Origin: Macrostomum lignano
Lineage: Eukaryota
DNA: 64,000 nt
NCBI GenBank assembly: GCA_002269645.1
Contig: NIVC01001670.1
Span: 1-64,000 of the forward strand
Direction: 5' to 3'
The position numbers and the translations under genes are program-made. Under the pieces are notes generated by a model. It was given only the letters and a program-made list of their open reading frames with translations, had not been told where the DNA came from and did no database searches. This document shows positions 14,208 to 53,599 of this stretch, one piece after another; positions within the stretch are counted from its first letter, which is position 1, and every line of letters starts with the position of its first letter.

Positions 14208-32074
<17,867 letters not shown>

Positions 32075-35174: not shown

Positions 35175-36822
35175 ATGCGGCCATCTGGCGAACTCGGCGG
35201 CATTGCAGCCGCCTTCTGGCCCCGGCGTCACGGGCGCCTTCGCTGGCGGCTGGTGCAGACTGGCGCGGCCGCCCTGCTGCTGTCCGCCCTGCTGCTCTAC
35301 CTGACCTCGTCGTCTACCGCCCGACATATGTCGGCCCTGTCAGTCTTGCCGACTGTCGGGCAGTCGTCTCAACGACGTCTCCTGCTGGAGGCAGCAGTGA
35401 TTAACGAATCGGTTAACAGCAACTTGTCCGAACGGCAGCTGCAGCTGAGCAAAAAATACTGGGCAAAGGTAGAGTAGAGTAGATTAGAATAGAGTAGAGT
35501 AGAGTAGAGTAGAGGAGAGTAGAGTAGAGTAGAGTAGAGTAGAGGAGAGTAGAGTAGAGTAGAGTAGAGGAGAGTAGAGTAGAGTAGAGTAGAGTAGATT
35601 AAAATAGAGTAGAGTAGAGTAGAGTAGAGCAGAGTAGAGTAGAGTAGAGTAGAGTAGAGTAGATTAAAATAGAGTAGAGTAGAGTAGAGTAGAGTAGAGT
35701 AGAGTAGAGTAGAGTAGAGTAGAGCAGAGTAGAGTAGAGTAGAGTAGAGTAGAGTAGATTAAAATAGAGTAGAGTAGAGTAGAGTAGAGTAGAGTAGAGT
35801 AGAGTAGAGTAGAGTAGAGTAGAGTAGAGTAGAGTAGAGCAGAGTAAGGTAGAGTAAGCTGAATTCATTTTCTGTTTGTTTTCCAGGTGCAGCTGCACTT
35901 TTCCAACGGCGGCGCCGACTCCCCACACTACCGGATGCTTGAGTCCCGATGCAGCGTCCCCGACAACGAGACCGAGCCGATCCAGGCGCTCCAGTTGCCC
36001 CCGACCGGCTTCTCCGACCACCCCTACCTGATCAACTCCGGCCCCTGCACCGGCCGCGTCTCCATCGTCCTCGCCGTTCACTCGGCCATCGGGCACTCGG
36101 ACCGGCGCCGTGTCATCCGCGAGACCTGGGGCAGCGTCCGCTACGTCCGCGGCCGCCGGCTGCTGCTCGTTTTCTTTCTCGGCCGGCCGGCCGGCGACGC
36201 CGAGCAGCGGCAGCAGGCCGCAGTGGCGGAGGAGGCGGCCCGCCACCAGGACATTGTGCAGCGCGACTTTGTTGACAGCTACAGGAACATGACCATCAAG
36301 CACCTGGGCATCTACGACTGGCTGTTCGAGTTCTGCAAGTCCGCCGACTGGCTCGTCAAGGTCGACGACGATGTGTTTGTCGACGTCTTCCACCTGGAGG
36401 CGTTTCTCAGCACCTACCGGCCGGGCGCTGGGCTCTGCTGCAAGGTGCAGAGCGGCAGGCCGGAGCGAGTCCCCAGCGACAAGTGGTTCGTCACCAGGCG
36501 GGAGTTCCCCGGCGACAAGTACCCGAAGTACTGCGAAGGCTACGCCTACATCATCAAGCCAACGCTCGCCCGGCTGCTCTACTGGTGCTCCGTGTTCTCC
36601 AGACGTCTGTGGATCGATGACGTCTACGTGCTGGGCATCCTGGTGCAGCGGCTGGGCCTCCGGCACCAGCCAGCCCTGCAGGGTCACCTGTGGGCCGACC
36701 TGCTGCCCAGCCACATGGGAAAGGCCATCGTTGATAACGTCTTCCTGGTGGACAGGCACAACGGACTCCAGGGCAGCACCTGGCGGAGACTGCACAGGGC
36801 TGCTGTGAAGTACTCCTACTGA
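35175..36822 (+). CDS. GT31-family beta-1,3-galactosyltransferase-like type II membrane protein, about 409 aa, 2 exons
   Basis: Exon 1 35175-35468 (MRPSG..., TM segment AAALLLSALLLYL); intron 35469-35886; exon 2 35887-36822 with GT31 motifs VFFLG, DIVQRDFVDSYRNMTIK, WLVKVDDDVFV (DxD), YPKYCEGYAYII, IDDVYVLG; AATAAA near 36926. Confidence 0.92.
35469..35855. repeat. (AGAGT)n pentanucleotide array filling the GT31 intron from the donor onward
   Basis: The donor AAG|GTAGAG is the first unit of the array. Confidence 0.95.
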
Positions 36823-37665
36823 CCTGCCTGCGCGCACACAGGCTGCTGTACGAGTGTTGATACGCGCATTAACAAACGTATTTATTTTTGTTAATATCGA
36901 TAAGAATATTGTTTACATGTTGCAAAATAAAATTGAGAAAATAACTTTAGATTTCTTTTTATTGATCGATCGGTTTTATTAATCCGAAATTGAATTATCA
37001 ATCACAATTTTCTGTCACTTTAGAGTCACGATTGCCTCCACCAAAAATGATGCCGACCGACTGATGCCACAGCAGCCCTAAAAGGAAGATTGTATAAATT
37101 ATCGAGTGAATTCAGTGCACTCAACCGGCGAGGGCCATTGCTTGCCCATTCCGCCGACTCCCCTGAGCAGGCGCACAAGCGCGCGGATACGTACGCAGGC
37201 ACACACTCACACAGGAGTGTACAGCGGCCCTAACTTTATTTATCGTTAGGCATGTACACTTCACTGCGCCTTGCGGGTTGGCCCTCAAGGGCGTTTAAAA
37301 TTGCACGAGCAGAGCCAAGCCGAGATTCCAATTCAGCCCCAAATTAATGCGACTGCACTTGGAATCGAGCCTGGGCCGCTGGAACATCAGAGCGCCGCGC
37401 TGGGCGTTAAAGATGGTTAATTATAATTATTATGGTTAATGAAGAACGGTATTGAACGAGAAGAGAAATAAGGGGATTGTAGATAAGATTAGATAAGCTA
37501 ACGAAGATAAGGTAAGGACCAGACCAGGGCATGGGGTTTCGGGTGGAGAGGCCAGCCCCCCATTTTAATAAGAGCAGGCTCTTTTTCAGCTGAGAATCTG
37601 GGACGCCCTGGGTGAAGCATGCACTGGTCAGTTGTTTCAAGTGAATGCTGACGCACCGCATTGAG

Positions 37666-43216: not shown

Positions 43217-43972
43217 ATGAGGTGCGAATTAGCCGTCGCAATTCTGATCCTGAGCAGCCAGTTGGAGCCAGCCGAGGCCGTCTGTCCCGCGCCGTTCGCA
43301 ACCGAGGCGGGCAGGTGTGTATTCATAAGCCAACCGCAGGCCTACAGCTGGTGCGAGGCCAACCTGCAGTGCGAAGGCCTCGGAGGCGAGCTCATCAACT
43401 CGTACAGCTCGCTGAAGCTGCTGGCCGGCATGCCGAGCTTTCAATGCGCCGACACGAGCAGGAGCTGCGGTGTGTGGCTCGGGGTGACCGACCTGGCCGA
43501 GGAGAGGGGGGCCAACAGGTCCGGCTGGCAGCTGGGGAACAGGAACGGCGTTCTTCCCCTGAACGACTCCCTGTGATCCCCCGACATGCCCAGCAGCAAA
43601 AGCAGCAACCAGGACTGCCTGTCCACCTCCGGCTTCTCAACTGAACTCATCGATCTGAAGTGCTCAACTCTGCGCGGATTTGCCTGCGAGTTCGTGGGAG
43701 CCGCGGCCCGGAATTTGACGGTGAGAGCCACGTGGCGGCGGGTGCAGTTCAGGCGCTCGGACTTCAACCCCAGCTCTGAGTACTGCTATGCGGATGTGCA
43801 GCGAGTGCTCAGCCCGATTCACTGCCTGGCGGCCGCCACCAAAGCTGGCAAAAGCAAGGACCTGCTGTACAACAGCAAGCTGAGGACCTGCCGTCTGCTG
43901 CTGTTCTCTGACTCCCAGGTGCAGGAGCAGATCGAGACCAGCGCCGACTGGGTGAAGTTCAGCGCCTACTGA
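43217..43972 (+). pseudogene. Secreted C-type lectin domain + PAN/apple-like domain gene with an in-frame TGA (43574-43576)
   Basis: Single frame: signal peptide; CTLD motifs CPAPF...GRC, SWCEANLQCEGLGGEL, VWLGVTD, QDC, DLKCSTLRGFACE; C-terminal HCLAA..LLYNSKLRTCRLL. The TGA in DSL*SPDMP sits at the expected CTLD Trp. AATAAA near 44223. Confidence 0.8.
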
Positions 43973-44454
43973 CGCGCGAAAGGCCCCGATGCGAGTGGGT
44001 GTCCGGAATCAAATTTCACCAAAGCTCCGTTCTCTAAACGTTTCCCAAAGAGACAGCGTCTCAACCCCACTGCAATTAATAATTAAATACTCTGGAGCTT
44101 GCACCTGTCCGGTGCACAGGTTGTTGCACAAGTGTATCGATTTGTATTCTAACAAAATACAACTTGATTACTCCAGCCATGTGAACTCCAGGTCTCCATG
44201 GTCTCTCCAAGATAATCGCATCGAATAAAAAATAAACTGAACATCATTTTTTGTTCGGCCAGGCAAAGTCAATTGAAAAAAACAAAGCAACACTTTTTAT
44301 CATTCCTATGTTGCCACGCGTTAAAATTGCGAAGCAATTTGTTTTCAGCATGTTAAACGAAAGATACCACAGAAACTGCGTTATGCGGCAAAAGTGACCG
44401 CATATGATTTCTCTGTCAACAGCTTAGCCGCATCTCGCCTCTCCACCTGCCACT

Positions 44455-44825
44455 CCGCTGCCGCTCCGCCTGCCTCTTCACCTGCCGCTCCACCTGCCGC
44501 TCCGCCTGCCGCTCCGCCTGCCGCTCCGCCTGCCGCTCCGCCTGCCGCTCAGCTTGCCGCTCCGCCTGCCGCTCCGCCTGCCTCTCCACCTGCCGCTCCG
44601 CTTGCCGCTCCGCCTGCCGCTCCGCCTGCCGCTCAGCTTGCCGCTCCGCCTGCCGCTCCGCCTGCCGCTCCGCCTGCCTCTCCACCTGCCGCTCCGCCTG
44701 CCGCTCCGCCTGCCGCTCCGCCTGCCGCTCCGCCAGCCGCTCCGCCTGCCGCTCCGCCTGCCGCTCCGCCTGCCGCTCCGCCTGCCGCTCCGCCTGCCGC
44801 TCCGCCTGCCGCTCCGCCTGCCGCT
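44455..44825. repeat. 12-bp repeat (CCGCTCCGCCTG)
   Basis: Direct periodicity. Confidence 0.92.
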
Positions 44826-45252
44826 AGTAGCTGGTAGCTGGTAGCTGGTAGCTGATTAGCTGATAACTGGTAGCTGGTAGCTGGTAGCATATTTAAGGGA
44901 CGAGAGTCGCATTTTCGGGAAATAAATAATCGGTACACTCACATATAAAATGAAATTTGCCTTGTAAGGATTCCGGTGAAAGTCAAAACCAGTTAATTTT
45001 GCTAATCAAACGTCCATTTTTCAGTTTTATCATAATACTAGGTACATAATTAGTAATTTCTGACACACTTCCAGTTAAGATTTGAGGAGCCCCGAATAAA
45101 GTGAAGAAATTACGCTCGTGGAACCAGAATTTTATGCATAAATAGCCGATATTAATTTTATTAATGAATAAATATTTCCCAGCAAGAGTTTATAGCGTCA
45201 AGATTTCCGAGTCCGGTAAATGTCGGGCTGACCTGCCACCACCTGGCGCAGC

Positions 45253-45498
45253 TCACAGCACGACGGCTTTCGCCACCTTGCCAACCACCTTGAGAACGCG
45301 GACCACCTTTCTGAGTCGGATGCCCTTCTTGACGAGTCCCTCGTCGCGCTCCTCGGACAGGCCGGACTCGTCAATGTTGGACAGGGCCTCCAGCGCGGCC
45401 ACAGTCTCCGCCTCCTCATCGGTCAGGTGCTGCTGGCTGGGCACGGCAGCGGCCAGGACGGCGCACAGCAGGAGGCCGAGAGCGAGCTGCCACTTCAT
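45253..45498 (-). CDS. Antimicrobial/cytolytic peptide-like prepropeptide, 81 aa, single exon
   Basis: MKWQLALGLLLCAVLAAAVPS (signal), acidic propiece QQHLTDEEAETVAALEALSNIDESGLSEERDEGLVKK, cationic C-terminus GIRLRKVVRVLKVVGKVAKAVVL; AATAAA at 45157-45162 on the minus strand. Confidence 0.8.
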   Translation of the reverse strand: MKWQLALGLLLCAVLAAAVPSQQHLTDEEAETVAALEALSNIDESGLSEERDEGLVKKGIRLRKVVRVLKVVGKVAKAVVL

Positions 45499-46309
45499 GC
45501 TGATTGAAGTATTCCGGCTGTCTGTAGATGAGGCTTGGAGGAGTCTGCAATTGCTGGCTTGGCCCGCTAAGCAGTGCGGAGCAGCCGCGCATTTATGCAC
45601 TCAAAACGGACACGTTTTTCCGGTTCGAAGGATCGACGCGCACTGCTGAGTTGCGGGCCGCACGTGAGCAAAGAACGAAGCGCTCTGACCCGCCCAGGAC
45701 AAATATTTCAAACTACTGTATAGAATTTGCGCTTTTGCTCGAGGTCCGGCACAGAGTCCCCGTTGTTTGTTAAAGGCTGCCTGACAAGATGCCACAGTGT
45801 CCTTTGTGCGAACTGTCAATATTGACGACAATTTCAGGGTGCCCTTTGCTATTTATCATGTCTTACAGTGCATTTGCTCGCTTTGCTTAGATTAAGCAAT
45901 CCAAAGCAGCAGACACAAAAAGATGAGAAGTAATTTACATAGTCTGTAATCTCTAATGTTCCAAAATCCCCTGGGATTTTTTCGCCGGACTTTTGCATAA
46001 CCATCATCATCATAATCCTCAGCTTATTGAGCAGATCTCAGACTGTCACGTCAGCTTCTTGACGCCCACGAATGTTTTCTACTCACAGAATATTTAGAAT
46101 CTTCAAGACTGTTATGAAACTCACCACCCTCCGTTACAATTGGGAAGGTAAACATCCATGACATTTTTCAACCTGCGCCCCAATTTCTGCCGGGGAAAAC
46201 AAAGATTGACTGATCATTGACACTTTCAGCAAGTCATGGTTTCGAGAAGACCTGCTTCCAGACAGGTCCTGCTTGCTGAAAGGCGCAGACTTGGTCTTGA
46301 CTCGGACAT

Positions 46310-46500
46310 CCGATACAAGCTCTGATTCGGACACGGATACAAGCTCTGATTCGGACACGGATACAAGCTCTGATTCGGACACGGATACAAGCCCTGATTC
46401 GGACACCGATACAAGCTCTGATTCGGACACCGATACAAGCTCTGATTCGGACACCGATACAAGCTCTGACTCGGACACGGATACAAGCTCTGATTCGGAC
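46310..46500. repeat. 24-bp repeat (GATACAAGCTCTGATTCGGACACG)
   Basis: About 8 copies. Confidence 0.9.
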
Positions 46501-46760: not shown

Positions 46761-48944
46761 TCAGGTAGCCACTGCCGCCACCAGTCGCGTCTGCAGCAGG
46801 GCGGCGACGTGCATTGACAGCGGAACGACGTCCGGCGGGCTTCCACCGAGCAGCAGGTAGACGCGGCGCCGACGACGGTCGAAAGCGGCCACGCAGGCGA
46901 GGGCGTAGTCGGACACGGATTTTGCCGGCGGAGCCTGACAAGCCCAGCCGTCCGGGGCTGCGTCATCGAGGGAGGCGGTCTGCGAATTCCGGTGGAGAGT
47001 TAACGAATACCGACACTGAAATCCCGATCACCGACACTGAAATCCCGAATACCGACACTGAAATTCCGAATACCGACACTGAAATCCCGAATACCGACAC
47101 TGAAATTCCGAATACCGACACTGAAATCCCGATCACCGACACTGAAATCCCGAATACCGACACTGAAATCTCGACTACCGACACTGAAATCCCGAATACC
47201 GACACTGAAATCCCGAATACCGACACTGAAATTCCGAATACCGACACTGAAATCTCGACTACCGACACTGAAATCCCGAATACCGACACTGAAATCTCGA
47301 CTACCGACACTGAAATCCCGAATACCGGCACTGAAATCCCGACTACCGACACTGAAATCCCGAATACCAACACTGAAATCCCGAATACCGACACCTGGGA
47401 GGCACCTTTCCTCAGATTAAGGATCACCAGAATGCCATTGGGATCTTCCAGTAAGATTTTCGGGGTGGGGAATTCCACTGTTAGGGACAGAGCCTATATT
47501 TCTCATCCACTGAACCGGCAGTCACGTGACACACCTTAAATAGAATGACGGCGCCGGGCACCAGCTGGTCGGGGATCCTTAGAGGCAGGTAGCGCATTGG
47601 ATTCTCGACAGCGTCGCGAAAGGCTGCCCAATCTATGTTTGGCGGAGGCGGCGGCGGTGGACGCGGAGGTGGCGTCGTTAGGGGAGGCGCTTGTCTTGCT
47701 GGCTGGCGCCGCTGCTTCCGTGACGAAGGCGCAGCGGCCGCCGGCGCGTCGGCTTGCGAGCCGCCCTGGCAGATCCGCGCGTCGGCTTGCGAGCCGCTCT
47801 GGCAGATCCGCGCGTCGGCTTGCAAGCCGCCCTGGCAGATCCGCGCGTCGGCTTGCGAGCCGCTCTGGCAGATCCGCGCGTCGGCTTGCGAGCCGCTCTG
47901 GCAGATCCGCGCGTCGGCTTGCGAACCGCCCTGGCAGATTCGGGCCAGCTGCCGCTGCTGCTGTTCAAGCAGGGCGCCGAGGCGCTGGAACTGGCGCTCA
48001 TTGTCTGCCCGCATTGACTGCAGCAGGCCGAACAGCTGGGCCAGCTGACTGGCCTCGGCTGGGCTGGCGGGCGTGGCGATGGGAGCCGCGGCCACCGCCT
48101 CCCTGGCGGCCGACGCTCTGCGGAATGCCGACTTCCCAGCCTCCGTAGGAGCGGCAAGCGTGCGATTTGAACTATAATCAGCGTCCTTAGCAACCTCCTT
48201 AGCAACTTTCTTAGCCGCATCTGATTGATTGCACAGCCGGCCCGAGTCCCTGGCAACATTGCGCCGATCCGCAGGCTGACAGAAGGCCAGGCAGTCCGGG
48301 TGACTCAGCAGACTTTTGCCGGCCAGCGCTGCCGCGTTCGCCTCGTTGCATTCGAGCAGCGACGAGCAGCTGGACGCTTCGTTGTATTCCAGCTGGCGCC
48401 GCTTCTCGGCCGCCTCTCGGCGACGCTTTGGCGACGGCCCGGCAACGACGGCAACGCCGGCGGCGTCCACAGTGACGCAGCCGCGACGCTTGAAGCCGCG
48501 CCGCTGGTCGCCAAGCCGCTGAATTGCGGCGGCGTCGCCAAACGGCGCGTCGGCGTCGGCCTCGCGCGCCTCACCGTCAGAGTCGAACTCCAGCCGGCGC
48601 GGCGGCTGCCAGGCGACACCGACTGGAAGAGCCAACTTGCGCGGCGGCCGGCCGAGGCGGGGCAGCGACCCGACCTGCGGCGACGCTGCTGTTGTTGACG
48701 ACTCACCCATAGGCGACGATGCGTTTGCCACCGCTGCTGCCGTAGCCTTCCGCTTGACCCGGCGTCTTCGACGTCGACTACGCCGACGCGGCGACTCGTC
48801 GACGGCGGCGCTGCTCGTCGCGGCCGGCGTCGGCGCGGAAGTGACGGTGGCGGAGGACGGCGCGCCGACTTGGCGCCGCTCTATCGGAGCAGCTGTCGGC
48901 GGCTCGCTCTCGGAGTCGTCGCTGTCGGTGGCGACTTTCTGCGT
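46761..48944 (-). CDS. COIL: Coilin-like protein: central low-complexity region and C-terminal Tudor-like domain; 5' exon(s) probably in 48945-49325
   Basis: Exon 48944-47535 (acidic DSDDSESE, basic RRRSRRRRRRVKRK, ending YLPLRIPDQLVPGAVILFK) splices in phase 0 to exon 46979-46761 (TASLDD...SVSDYALACVAAFDRRRRRVYLLL...ALLQTRLV). This recalls the coilin C-terminus (PxVGxxIAFK...VSDY...LIDPRL). Assignment is from remembered motif similarity, not a search. Confidence 0.55.
47006..47395. repeat. 21-bp intronic repeat (ACCGACACTGAAATCCCGAAT)
   Basis: Direct periodicity. Confidence 0.93.
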
Positions 48945-52294: not shown

Positions 52295-53599
52295 CACACA
52301 CAGACGGACAGACAGACTAAGACAGACACAGACAGACACAGACAGACAGACAGACAGACGGACAGACAGACAGACACACACACAGACAGACAGACGGACA
52401 CACAGACAGACAGACACACAGACAGACCATAACAAAAGTTTTGTTCCCGCGCAGCACGCAGTTAAGGTTGTCCACAGCGTCTGTGTGCACCACTGAGCTG
52501 GTGCCGCCGCTGCTGAACCAGACGATGGCTTCGACCAAGGCACCCGCCACATCGGGGCACTGCAGGCTCCAAGGCAGGGGAAAGTCGGGCGCCAGGAAGC
52601 GGGGCATGCTGGCCACCATGTAGTGGCCTGAGGTGTTGTAGGAGCGCACGAACTGATGGAATGGCGTATCGTAGGTTCGCTGCTGCCGGCTCTCCTTCTT
52701 GGTGGTCTCCACATGCACCTGCGAGCGATGGTAACTGACTGACTGACTGACTGACTGACTGACTGACTGACTGACTGACTGACTGACTGACTGACTGACT
52801 GACTGACTGACTGACTGACTGACTGACTGACTGACTGACTGACTGACTGACTGACTGACTGACTGACTGACTGACTGACTGACTGACTGACTGACTGACT
52901 GACTGACTGACTGACTGACTGACTGACTGACTGACTGACTGACCTGAGAGCTGTTGGGATCTAGCGGCAGTTGCAGGAAGTAGTCATCGTCCCACATGCG
53001 GAAGGCGCGGGTCTGTCTTGCTGCGCCGCGCATCAGCAGGGGCCGAAGCTGGCGCACCTGCTCCTGGTAAAACCGGCCGGGCGGCGGGAAGCCGTCAGCC
53101 AACTCGGGCACGGGCAGCTGGGGATGCCTTCAGGCGGAGTGGAGATGACTCGACCATGTGCTTTAATGCCCGACAGAGCCCCCTATGTGCCTTAATGTCC
53201 GATAGAGCCTCCTATGTACTTTAATGTGCGACAGAACTTCTATGTACTTTAATGTCCGGTAGAGCCCCTTATGTACTTTAATGTCGCATGGAGCCCCTCA
53301 TGTACTTTAATGTCCGATACAGCATTTATGTACTTCAATGTACCTGCTACTGCACACTTGTACTTGCATAGCCGCACACACACTTCCCCCGCTCACCTGG
53401 AAGTCCCAAACGGACGTTTATGGCCGATCCCGTACGCCTCCTCGCCGCCGTCCAGCAAGTCCAGCCAGTAGCAGCAGAAGCAACCGCAGCCGGCAAGCAG
53501 AAGCAACAAAGTTGTAACAATAATAAACGGCTTCAAACGCCCAGGTGGCGAGGTGCTCGCCAAGCCCGACGTCTCCGAGCTGCTCGTTGCGCCTGTCAT
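49395..53599 (-). CDS. JmjC/Cupin_8 2-oxoglutarate oxygenase-like protein with N-terminal hydrophobic segment, EF-hand and C-terminal RDEL, about 434 aa, 6 exons
   Basis: Exons 53599-53397, 53127-52944, 52718-52428, 51937-51533, 50206-50150 and 49559-49395 with consistent phases. Motifs: [29 protein letters not shown] (HxD), [17 protein letters not shown] (distal His), [12 protein letters not shown] (EF-hand loop), terminal RDEL. Confidence 0.88.
49660..50062. repeat. 13-14-bp G-rich repeat (GAGGGAGGGGCAT)
   Basis: Direct periodicity. Confidence 0.88.
50265..51527. repeat. 36-bp intronic minisatellite (CCCTCTCCATTCACAGTGCCACTCTATTCACACAGT)
   Basis: Fills the intron 50207-51532. Confidence 0.95.
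51960..52427. repeat. (GACA)n/(CA)n intronic microsatellite
   Basis: Direct periodicity up to the donor. Confidence 0.95.
52733..52943. repeat. (GACT)n microsatellite forming nearly an entire 225-nt intron
   Basis: Direct periodicity. Confidence 0.95.
53160..53340. repeat. Degenerate repeat of about 29 bp (TATGTACTTTAATGTCCGATAGAGCC)
   Basis: About 6 diverged copies. Confidence 0.7.

Follow-up and report, generated by a model that had tools for sequence, protein, structure and literature searches.

A candidate host-defence peptide precursor of Macrostomum lignano and its apparently genus-restricted gene family

The preproregion superfamily of anuran skin peptides is the textbook case of a multigene precursor system, in which a conserved signal peptide and an acidic propiece are followed by a dibasic site and one hypervariable, often Gly-amidated peptide, and in which one prepro scaffold serves very different peptide classes. 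In arminin of Hydra, an anionic N-terminal part precedes the cationic C-terminal active peptide; spider precursors carry a quadruplet processing motif, xxER, with Arg at P1 and Glu at P2-P4, and in the non-disulfide-bridged peptides (NDBPs) of scorpions the propiece is C-terminal. For free-living flatworms, innate-immunity effector molecules are, to our knowledge, almost unknown. Antimicrobial peptides (AMPs) of Hydra have been described as genus-restricted, paralogous, signal-bearing precursors with bipartite negative/positive charge (PMC10945409), and the few AMPs reported from flatworms stem from in-silico mining of a parasitic cestode, Mesocestoides corti, where mesco-1 to -3 were selected as proteins of <200 residues with a signal peptide and a 20-residue window of isoelectric point (pI) > 10, mesco-2 being active (PMC11546468). 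Here we describe a gene at positions 45253-45498 (minus strand) of a 64,000-nucleotide (nt) stretch of Macrostomum lignano DNA (contig NIVC01001670.1, positions 1 to 64,000, assembly GCA_002269645.1), referred to below as the window. Intact and contained in one exon, the gene has its own promoter; it is a real family member and not a chance open reading frame (ORF). The family of secreted precursors to which it belongs appears to be undescribed and restricted to the genus.

The ORF starts at an ATG at 45498 and encodes 81 residues (MKWQLALGLLLCAVLAAAVPSQQHLTDEEAETVAALEALSNIDESGLSEERDEGLVKKGIRLRKVVRVLKVVGKVAKAVVL). A first-pass annotation, made from the letters alone, had placed a candidate AMP precursor here; the position proved correct, and the strand is minus. 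The signal peptide of about 20 residues that it had read agrees with a predicted segment composed of Lys2 in the n-region, a 14-residue hydrophobic core and Ala-Ala-Ala at -3 to -1, for which the (-3,-1) rule points to cleavage after residue 18, possibly 21. The Glu/Asp-rich propiece ending SEERDEGLVKK was likewise read correctly: it comprises 38 residues with 11 Asp/Glu, a net charge of -10 (the Lys-Lys left out) and a pI of 4.05, its C-terminus reads ...SEERDEGLV-KK, and the core ..ALEALSN.DES.. is present in the window protein as AALEALSNIDES. The composition given for the C-terminal tail, GIRLRKVVRVLKVVGKVAKAVVL, also holds, with 23 residues, seven Lys/Arg, no Asp/Glu and Val, Leu or Ile at 12 of the 16 non-basic positions. 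The tail has a charge of +7, eight Val, a pI of 12, a grand average of hydropathy (GRAVY) of 1.0, 61% hydrophobic residues and a computed monoisotopic mass of 2499.694 Da. Tail residues 15-16 form an internal Gly-Lys, a possible site of secondary processing or amidation. We consider it highly probable that the gene encodes a secreted prepropeptide cut at Lys-Lys (KK).

By length, an 81-codon ORF is unremarkable in the window, and the case for a gene therefore lies in homology, a promoter module and codon-level constraint. GC content by codon position is coding-like (0.74/0.36/0.86), and the coding sequence (CDS), with 61-69% GC, is bordered directly on its 3' side by an A+T-rich flank of 31-35% GC. 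An antisense ORF of 161 codons (45164-45649, plus strand) was rejected, being without homology and having a codon-position GC of 0.48/0.62/0.68 that mirrors the minus-strand gene.

The first-pass annotation had recognised no specific homolog, a statement that did not survive database searches. Among 5.8 billion proteins, seven matched, all of them M. lignano “hypothetical proteins” with E-values from 9e-15 to 5e-8. Two profile searches extended this set, an exhaustive HMMER search of 1.84 billion cluster representatives giving 12 matches and a word-indexed search of 5.8 billion proteins with a 19-sequence profile giving 18 clusters; the family totals about 20 clusters at 90% identity and more than 50 gene models. 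All members are from M. lignano, bar one 929-nt Logan contig (SRR31628392), and neither profile search recovered a taxon besides Macrostomum from these collections, whose flatworm coverage is thin. The lineage-specificity suggested by the first-pass annotation stands in that every relative found is Macrostomum, and the proposed order of signal, acidic propiece and cationic peptide is conserved throughout a multigene family. Examples are PAA68914.1/PAA62922.1 (P0027), PAA79923.1 (P0006) and PAA90711.1 (P0004), together with BOX15_Mlig010792, Mlig024774 and Mlig020420.

Like these MKWQLALGLLLC-type proteins, the window protein combines a signal of the form MKWQLALGLLLCA.LA.A, an acidic ALEALSN.DES propiece, KK and a cationic tail, and it is likewise encoded by a single-exon CDS behind a GAAAMACGTG-N-GCATAAAT promoter. 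Its signal fits MKWQLALGLLLCA.LA.A with 16 of 18 residues identical to four paralogue types, its propiece falls in the family range of 31-39 residues with an (A)LEALSN.(D/E)ES core, and its tail, beginning G-I-R-L-R and carrying +7, conforms to the family start x-[IVL]-R-[VIL]-R. In all, the window gene shows five of the six features of the family; the sixth, a C-terminal Gly, is also absent in the nearest subgroup (P0027). No deposited member is identical to the window protein, CDS identity being 75-77% at the nucleotide level. Paralogues occur in M. lignano as tandem pairs about 2.8 kb apart (L001, L003, L004), and six models lie on one 985-kb contig; tblastn of the 64-kb window found no second copy of the window gene. 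Pfam returned no family at E <= 10 for the window protein and nothing meaningful for seven paralogues, and a sequence search of the PDB gave chance matches alone (E >= 0.39). A precomputed PF22991 match on P0001 was discarded as borderline; it arises because the propiece helix is duplicated within that protein. Several UniProt models are fused to neighbouring genes or misnamed, namely P0025 (634 residues, “Sushi domain-containing”), P0014 (1047 residues, “Neur_chan_LBD”), P0003 (“SERPIN domain-containing”, 73 residues), P0001 and P0102, the last two with an internally duplicated prepro region.

The window gene and its paralogues are further linked by a common promoter module. Aligned upstream regions of the family read GAAA(A/C)ACGTG, an 11-12 nt spacer and then GCATAAAT; in the window, minus-strand positions 45591-45620 carry the module as GAAAAACGTG-N12-GCATAAAT. 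Searched as GAAAMACGTG-N8-14-GCATAAAT, the module has a single match in the 64 kb and none in 100 shuffles, and it is found once upstream of each of seven out of seven family genes (L001, L003, L004, L005), 81-118 nt from the ATG. At the P0006 locus (L002), the module is present in degenerate form, without an exact match. The Logan contig SRR31628392 carries, at L005 541-813, a member (P0019) with the same promoter module and a Pro/Arg-rich, repetitive tail of PRVRx repeats with a charge of +14; this contig probably stems from another Macrostomum genome. When the window was compared with four M. lignano paralogue loci, no alignment was obtained outside CDS and promoter module, and the flanks are unrelated. 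One may speculate that the ACGTG core is bound by a factor of basic leucine zipper (bZIP) or basic helix-loop-helix (bHLH) type.

Transcription would start about 25-30 nt downstream of GCATAAAT. No ATG lies between this TATA-like element and the MKWQ start codon, which makes the MKWQ ATG the first, and the downstream polyadenylation signal listed in the first-pass annotation is indeed present (Table 1). The predicted transcription unit is thus a single exon of about 420 nt from 45565 to 45140, both ends being estimates. “Partial” M. lignano models contain 10-30 translated codons of the 5' untranslated region (UTR) before MKWQ, fitting leaders of at least 50 nt. Such codons suggest that transcripts underlie these models, and hence that at least some paralogues are probably expressed.

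Constraint along the precursor is graded, as determined by Nei-Gojobori comparison of the window gene with five paralogues. In the 18 signal codons, the ratio of non-synonymous to synonymous substitution rates (dN/dS) is 0.07-0.12 at a dS of 0.43-0.91, and given this synonymous divergence the near-identity of the signals reflects selection and not recency. The propiece yields a dN/dS of 0.6-1.5 against paralogues while its acidic composition is retained. Tails are mostly unalignable and their dN/dS not estimable, with the exception of the P0027/P0028 subgroup, where the last 15 tail codons can be aligned (window RKVVRV[LKV]VGKVAKA[V]VL, subgroup WRRRRRFRWRKAIRVAGKVAKAVL). Against P0027 (RKAIRVAGKVAKAVL), these codons give Sd 9/12.7 and Nd 3/32.3 and a dN/dS of 0.04 (Fisher p = 1.3e-4). 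Nine synonymous against three non-synonymous differences, the latter all conservative, indicate that the tail is translated and constrained, including the seven residues after the internal Gly-Lys. P0027 thereby has the nearest tail, differing at its N-terminus (WRRRRRFRW... versus GIRL... in the window).

For release of the tail, the first-pass annotation had offered cleavage after KK or after EER, and the family supports the former. In an alignment of 20 sequences, K58 does not vary and the conservation of K57 is at least 90%, and in paralogues the cationic peptide always begins directly after KK. The Arg of EER, seven residues before the window tail, is replaced in most paralogues (SEEA, SEDG, SQEG, TDEK); because it is not conserved, cleavage at this point is unsupported, and we discarded release of a 30-mer as the principal route.

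Beyond KK follow divergent tails of 6-34 residues and of several types. Some alternate hydrophobic residues with Arg and are candidates for amidation (FVRVRVRL-G, FVRVRARIRL-G, IFRVRVHI-G), others alternate with His (GFHVHFH-G in P0031/P0033/P0105, FHLHLP-GK in P0108/P0109), one is a Pro/Arg-rich 33-mer (FLRVRLPRVRMPRVRLPRVRLPRLRVRFRWSKK), and the remainder include Trp/Arg/Tyr-rich 28-34-mers ending GK or GKR, one 25-mer with two Cys and one non-cationic decamer. A cationic or His-rich tail is present in 20 of 21 members. C-terminal G, GK or GKR endings are the usual substrate for C-terminal amidation, and the tail ends in G, GK, GKR or KKG in 17 of the 21. The window tail (...KAVVL-stop) and the P0027 group (..KAVL) both lack a terminal Gly signal; their internal Gly-Lys aligns with the terminal Gly-stop or GK of paralogues. 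An N-terminal X-X-His is a copper/nickel-binding motif of the ATCUN type known from some AMPs, and the GFH... peptides would expose such an N-terminus after KK cleavage.

A conserved secretory cassette, an invariant dibasic site, a charge-matched propiece, a hypervariable cationic or His-rich tail often bearing an amidation signal, tandem amplification and genus restriction are together characteristic of peptide families used in defence or offence, and make a host-defence peptide the most likely product. A secreted, KK-processed, membrane-active peptide of this kind is the function that we favour, by analogy with described precursors and with slightly better than even confidence. According to the proposed mechanism, the conserved signal peptide would bring the precursor into the endoplasmic reticulum, where the acidic, part-helical propiece could offset the positive charge of the C-terminal peptide while the precursor is transported and stored. 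A subtilisin/kexin-type convertase would then cut after Lys-Lys, a carboxypeptidase would remove the lysines from the propiece C-terminus, and in most paralogues the C-terminal Gly would be turned into an amide. From the window gene, the 23-mer GIRLRKVVRVLKVVGKVAKAVVL would be released, or possibly a 14-mer amide if the internal Gly-Lys were also used. The peptide would most likely act on anionic membranes as an antimicrobial or cytolytic effector. Of this chain, we infer the secretion, the points of cleavage, the amidation of paralogue products, a helical state at the membrane and an antimicrobial role. With +7 and 61% hydrophobic residues, the window peptide, if released as predicted, agrees with the charge and hydrophobicity criteria of linear cationic AMPs (>= +2, about 40-60% hydrophobic).

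Structural predictions are partly compatible with this function. An AlphaFold2 model built from the 20-sequence family alignment places helices at residues 4-18 (signal), 28-42 (propiece core) and 56-80 (KK and tail, with a predicted local distance difference test score, pLDDT, of about 70). Over tail residues 4-22, 18-residue windows have a hydrophobic moment (muH) of 0.54-0.55, compared with 0.47 for magainin 2 in the same calculation. As basic residues occupy tail positions 3, 6, 9, 12, 16 and 19, the moment is maximal at 115-120° (i/i+3 spacing), and in a helical arrangement six of the seven basic residues lie inside a 140-degree arc. Short paralogue peptides peak at 170-180°, a strand-type amphipathicity, whereas strand-like alternation in the window tail is confined to its start (I-R-L-R).

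A number of observations weigh against a host-defence function. The moment of the whole 23-mer (muH 0.29 at 100°, against 0.47 for magainin 2 and 0.52 for LL-37) does not exceed that of composition-matched shuffles (p = 0.20), Val, a poor helix former in water, makes up 35% of the tail, and the AlphaFold2 model has a mean pLDDT of 62.6, a moderate confidence. The first-pass remark that the tail is compatible with an amphipathic helix holds in part, for the modelled helix 56-80 and the 18-residue core, and not for the peptide as a whole; it is an acceptable description, without statistical demonstration and weaker as an argument than that annotation suggested, and composition is the robust property. 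Many paralogue products would be 6-10 residues long and amidated, a size seen more in signalling peptides than in AMPs. Propiece and tail net charge are inversely correlated across members (Spearman rho -0.83, p = 3.6e-6, n=21), which fits a neutralising propiece but takes members as independent, without phylogeny correction, and the dN/dS estimates above span 15-40 codons. The exact window protein is absent from a collection of 15 billion proteins; the literature searched for family gene IDs and peptide strings does not mention any member, and supplements of M. lignano papers gave no tissue data under family IDs. One supplement match to a family ID proved to be an unrelated gene with the same cluster number.

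Some of these observations would fit a signalling-peptide precursor, a neuropeptide, hormone or pheromone gene yielding small receptor ligands through the KK site and amidation. We regard such a function as unlikely. The invariant KK is a dibasic site of neuropeptide type, the amidation-type ending of 17 of the 21 tails points the same way, many predicted products would be amides of 6-10 residues (FVRVRVRLa, IFRVRVHIa, GFHVHFHa, FHLHLPa), and the C-terminal 15 residues of the tail are kept between the window gene and P0027. A precedent for a double role comes from Hydra, in which neuron-derived peptides can reportedly serve as neuropeptide and antibacterial alike (PMC5614986). The pattern of conservation is, however, inverted with respect to neuropeptide genes, whose mature peptide is expected to be more conserved than the rest and is often present in several copies: here the signal is near-invariant and the most conserved part, the mature region is hypervariable (6-34 residues), and the tail end is kept with the P0027 subgroup alone. 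Dozens of tandem paralogues with one peptide copy per precursor, the lack of a terminal amidation signal in the window copy, and its 23-residue product with +7 and 61% hydrophobicity also argue against receptor ligands. Propiece charge scales with tail charge, moreover, which is sensible only if tail charge is a liability that needs masking, and a search of the Macrostomum neuropeptide literature found no match to the family.

A gland secretion evolving under sexual or ecological conflict, such as a seminal-fluid, prostate, adhesive/release or rhabdite component, is a doubtful alternative, as is its corollary that mating interactions and not microbes drove the diversification. In Macrostomum, reproduction-related genes are reported to be rapidly evolving and without detectable homologues (PMC7336406), but six family IDs are absent from the 17 supplementary files of that study, a weak argument given that transcript naming may differ. 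Genus restriction, tandem amplification and a hypervariable secreted part would suit such a role, and one promoter module common to the members suggests a single dedicated secretory cell type. On the other hand, tails that are consistently cationic and hydrophobic or alternate with His, a propiece matched to them in charge, and amidation are generic for membrane-active defence peptides and, as far as we know, undescribed for flatworm seminal proteins. Cytolytic peptides of poor selectivity typically combine high hydrophobicity with high positive charge, and with a GRAVY of 1.0 and +7 the window peptide could serve as a digestive or offensive cytolysin in gut or pharynx, lysing diatoms, bacteria or prey cells for nutrition or predation. 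The molecular evidence is the same as for host defence, and the sequence offers nothing that separates the two; we give this use a slim chance. It seems very improbable that the window gene, though a true descendant of the family, has fallen silent or is decaying and has lost its expression or function. The exact protein is on record nowhere in the collections searched, the gene stands alone in 64 kb between tandem-repeat arrays, and a neighbouring C-type lectin ORF has an in-frame stop, all of which might suggest decay; its ORF is nevertheless intact, its promoter module fits the family pattern exactly, first-ATG context and poly(A) signal are kept, and signal and tail C-terminus are under purifying selection.

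Table 1 Coordinates of features of the peptide gene in the 64-kb window
Feature	Position	Strand	Basis or remark
Box GAAAAACGTG (ACGTG core), 5' half of promoter module	45611..45620	-	pattern search, upstream alignments
TATA-like element GCATAAAT	45591..45598	-	93 nt upstream of ATG; upstream alignments
5' UTR, about 65 nt	45499..45565	-	estimated from TATA-like position
Predicted signal peptide, codons 1-18, MKWQLALGLLLCAVLAAA	45445..45498	-	translation; cleavage point predicted (AxA rule)
Acidic propiece, codons 19-56	45331..45444	-	translation; AlphaFold2 helix at residues 28-42
Lys-Lys, predicted prohormone-convertase-type site	45325..45330	-	K57/K58 conservation in 20-sequence alignment
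Cationic tail GIRLRKVVRVLKVVGKVAKAVVL, predicted mature peptide	45256..45324	-	translation, family comparison
Stop codon TGA	45253..45255	-	translation
Poly(A) signal AATAAA	45157..45162	-	90 nt past stop; sole AATAAA/ATTAAA within 400 nt downstream

The surroundings of the gene are dominated by short-period tandem arrays (7-33 nt), which are extraordinarily dense all over the window and flank the peptide gene on both sides; examples lie at 44437-44825, 46298-46500 and 47004-47394, and at 15.6-16.2, 18.7-19.9, 25.4-26.2, 51.9-52.9 and 63.5-64 kb. One unit, translating as LSVC/QTDR, recurs widely, and the arrays yield most of the long “ORFs” of the window. An interspersed repeat of about 200 nt (window 37145-37403, L001 12720-12928, L002 11438-11548; 87-89% identical) is probably a mobile element shared within the genus. 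At a distance of 1.6 kb from the peptide gene, an ORF at 43217-43700 (plus strand) with a signal-like start, MRCELAVAILILSS, encodes a C-type lectin domain (Pfam Lectin_C, 5.5e-5, 24.3 bits, cut-off 22.6); with its in-frame TGA at 43574-43576, it is a pseudogene, contains a very short intron or reflects an assembly error. A lectin beside an AMP-like gene offers at best a faint hint of an immune context. Further coding sequence comprises an exon at 35863-36819 (plus strand) with a beta-1,3-galactosyltransferase domain (Pfam Galactosyl_T, 1.4e-41), whose best matches, including M. lignano, are 42-44% identical, and an ORF at 52320-53129 (minus strand) with a Cupin_8 (JmjC-like) domain (3.5e-12) between long tandem arrays. 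The 288-codon ORF at 22229-23092 (plus strand), beside a repeat array, matches Pfam AvrPiz-t (1.6e-14) with no individually significant stretch, probably a repeat-driven artefact.

For the family as a whole, we tentatively propose, at somewhat less than an even chance, that Macrostomum holds a “peptide library” in which one prepro scaffold and one promoter have been diversified into chemically distinct host-defence types. These types might comprise (Arg-Val)n-amide beta-strand octamers, His-alternating peptides, Pro/Arg-rich peptides and 20-34-residue peptides as in the window, a division that we put forward with the same reserve. If this is true, free-living flatworms would gain their first antimicrobial-peptide system, one that parallels those of frog skin and Hydra by convergence and adds an independent case of a “conserved secretory cassette plus diversifying warhead” beside frogs, cone snails, spiders and Hydra. 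Transgenesis and RNA interference work in Macrostomum, and research on this animal would obtain from the family a set of candidate effectors acting in immunity or on the microbiome, a promoter of about 120 bp that is probably specific to a cell type, and, for studies of structure and activity, a natural series of short cationic peptides that runs from 8-10-mer amides up to 34-mers. Were its role in signalling or reproduction instead, it would still be an undescribed, strongly amplified, taxon-restricted secretory gene family.

Among known systems, the short paralogue products resemble certain synthetic peptides in design. Designed beta-sheet-forming antimicrobial peptides of the (X-Arg/Lys)n-NH2 kind, for example of the (IRIK)2-NH2 type, alternate hydrophobic and cationic residues and are amidated, and the predicted FVRVRVRL-NH2, FVRVRARIRL-NH2 and IFRVRVHI-NH2 follow the same design, whereas the window peptide exceeds them in length and changes over to i/i+3 spacing. 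Precursors of linear cytolytic peptides from spiders and scorpions (latarcins, cupiennins, NDBPs) resemble the window protein in that signal, acidic propiece and linear cationic peptide all occur in them, but show no homology to it; E-E-R of the window formally fits xxER, yet its Arg is unconserved in paralogues and the junction is KK. The mesco peptides share with the window gene a flatworm origin and small, intron-less genes, and the window protein, with its tail of pI 12, would have been retrieved by all of the mining criteria used for them (PMC11546468). Mesco-2 differs in its 40 residues, its kinked helix and the disulfide bridge of its C-terminus, and the family profile recovered no M. 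corti protein, mesco peptides thus having no detectable relatives here. The description given for Hydra AMP families fits the window family as well (PMC10945409), although profile searches detect no homology between them, and activity and microbiome phenotypes have been measured for Hydra whereas the window family is known from sequences. With anuran skin-peptide precursors of dermaseptin/brevinin type, the window family has in common the same gradient of constraint; it differs in its KK in place of a KR site and in the lack of homology (no Pfam family at E <= 10 for the window protein, profile searches without amphibian match), and since the animals belong to different phyla the likeness is convergent. 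Judged by its sequence, the window gene thus appears to work as frog-skin and Hydra-type precursors do, by convergence and as no detectable relative of a named AMP family.

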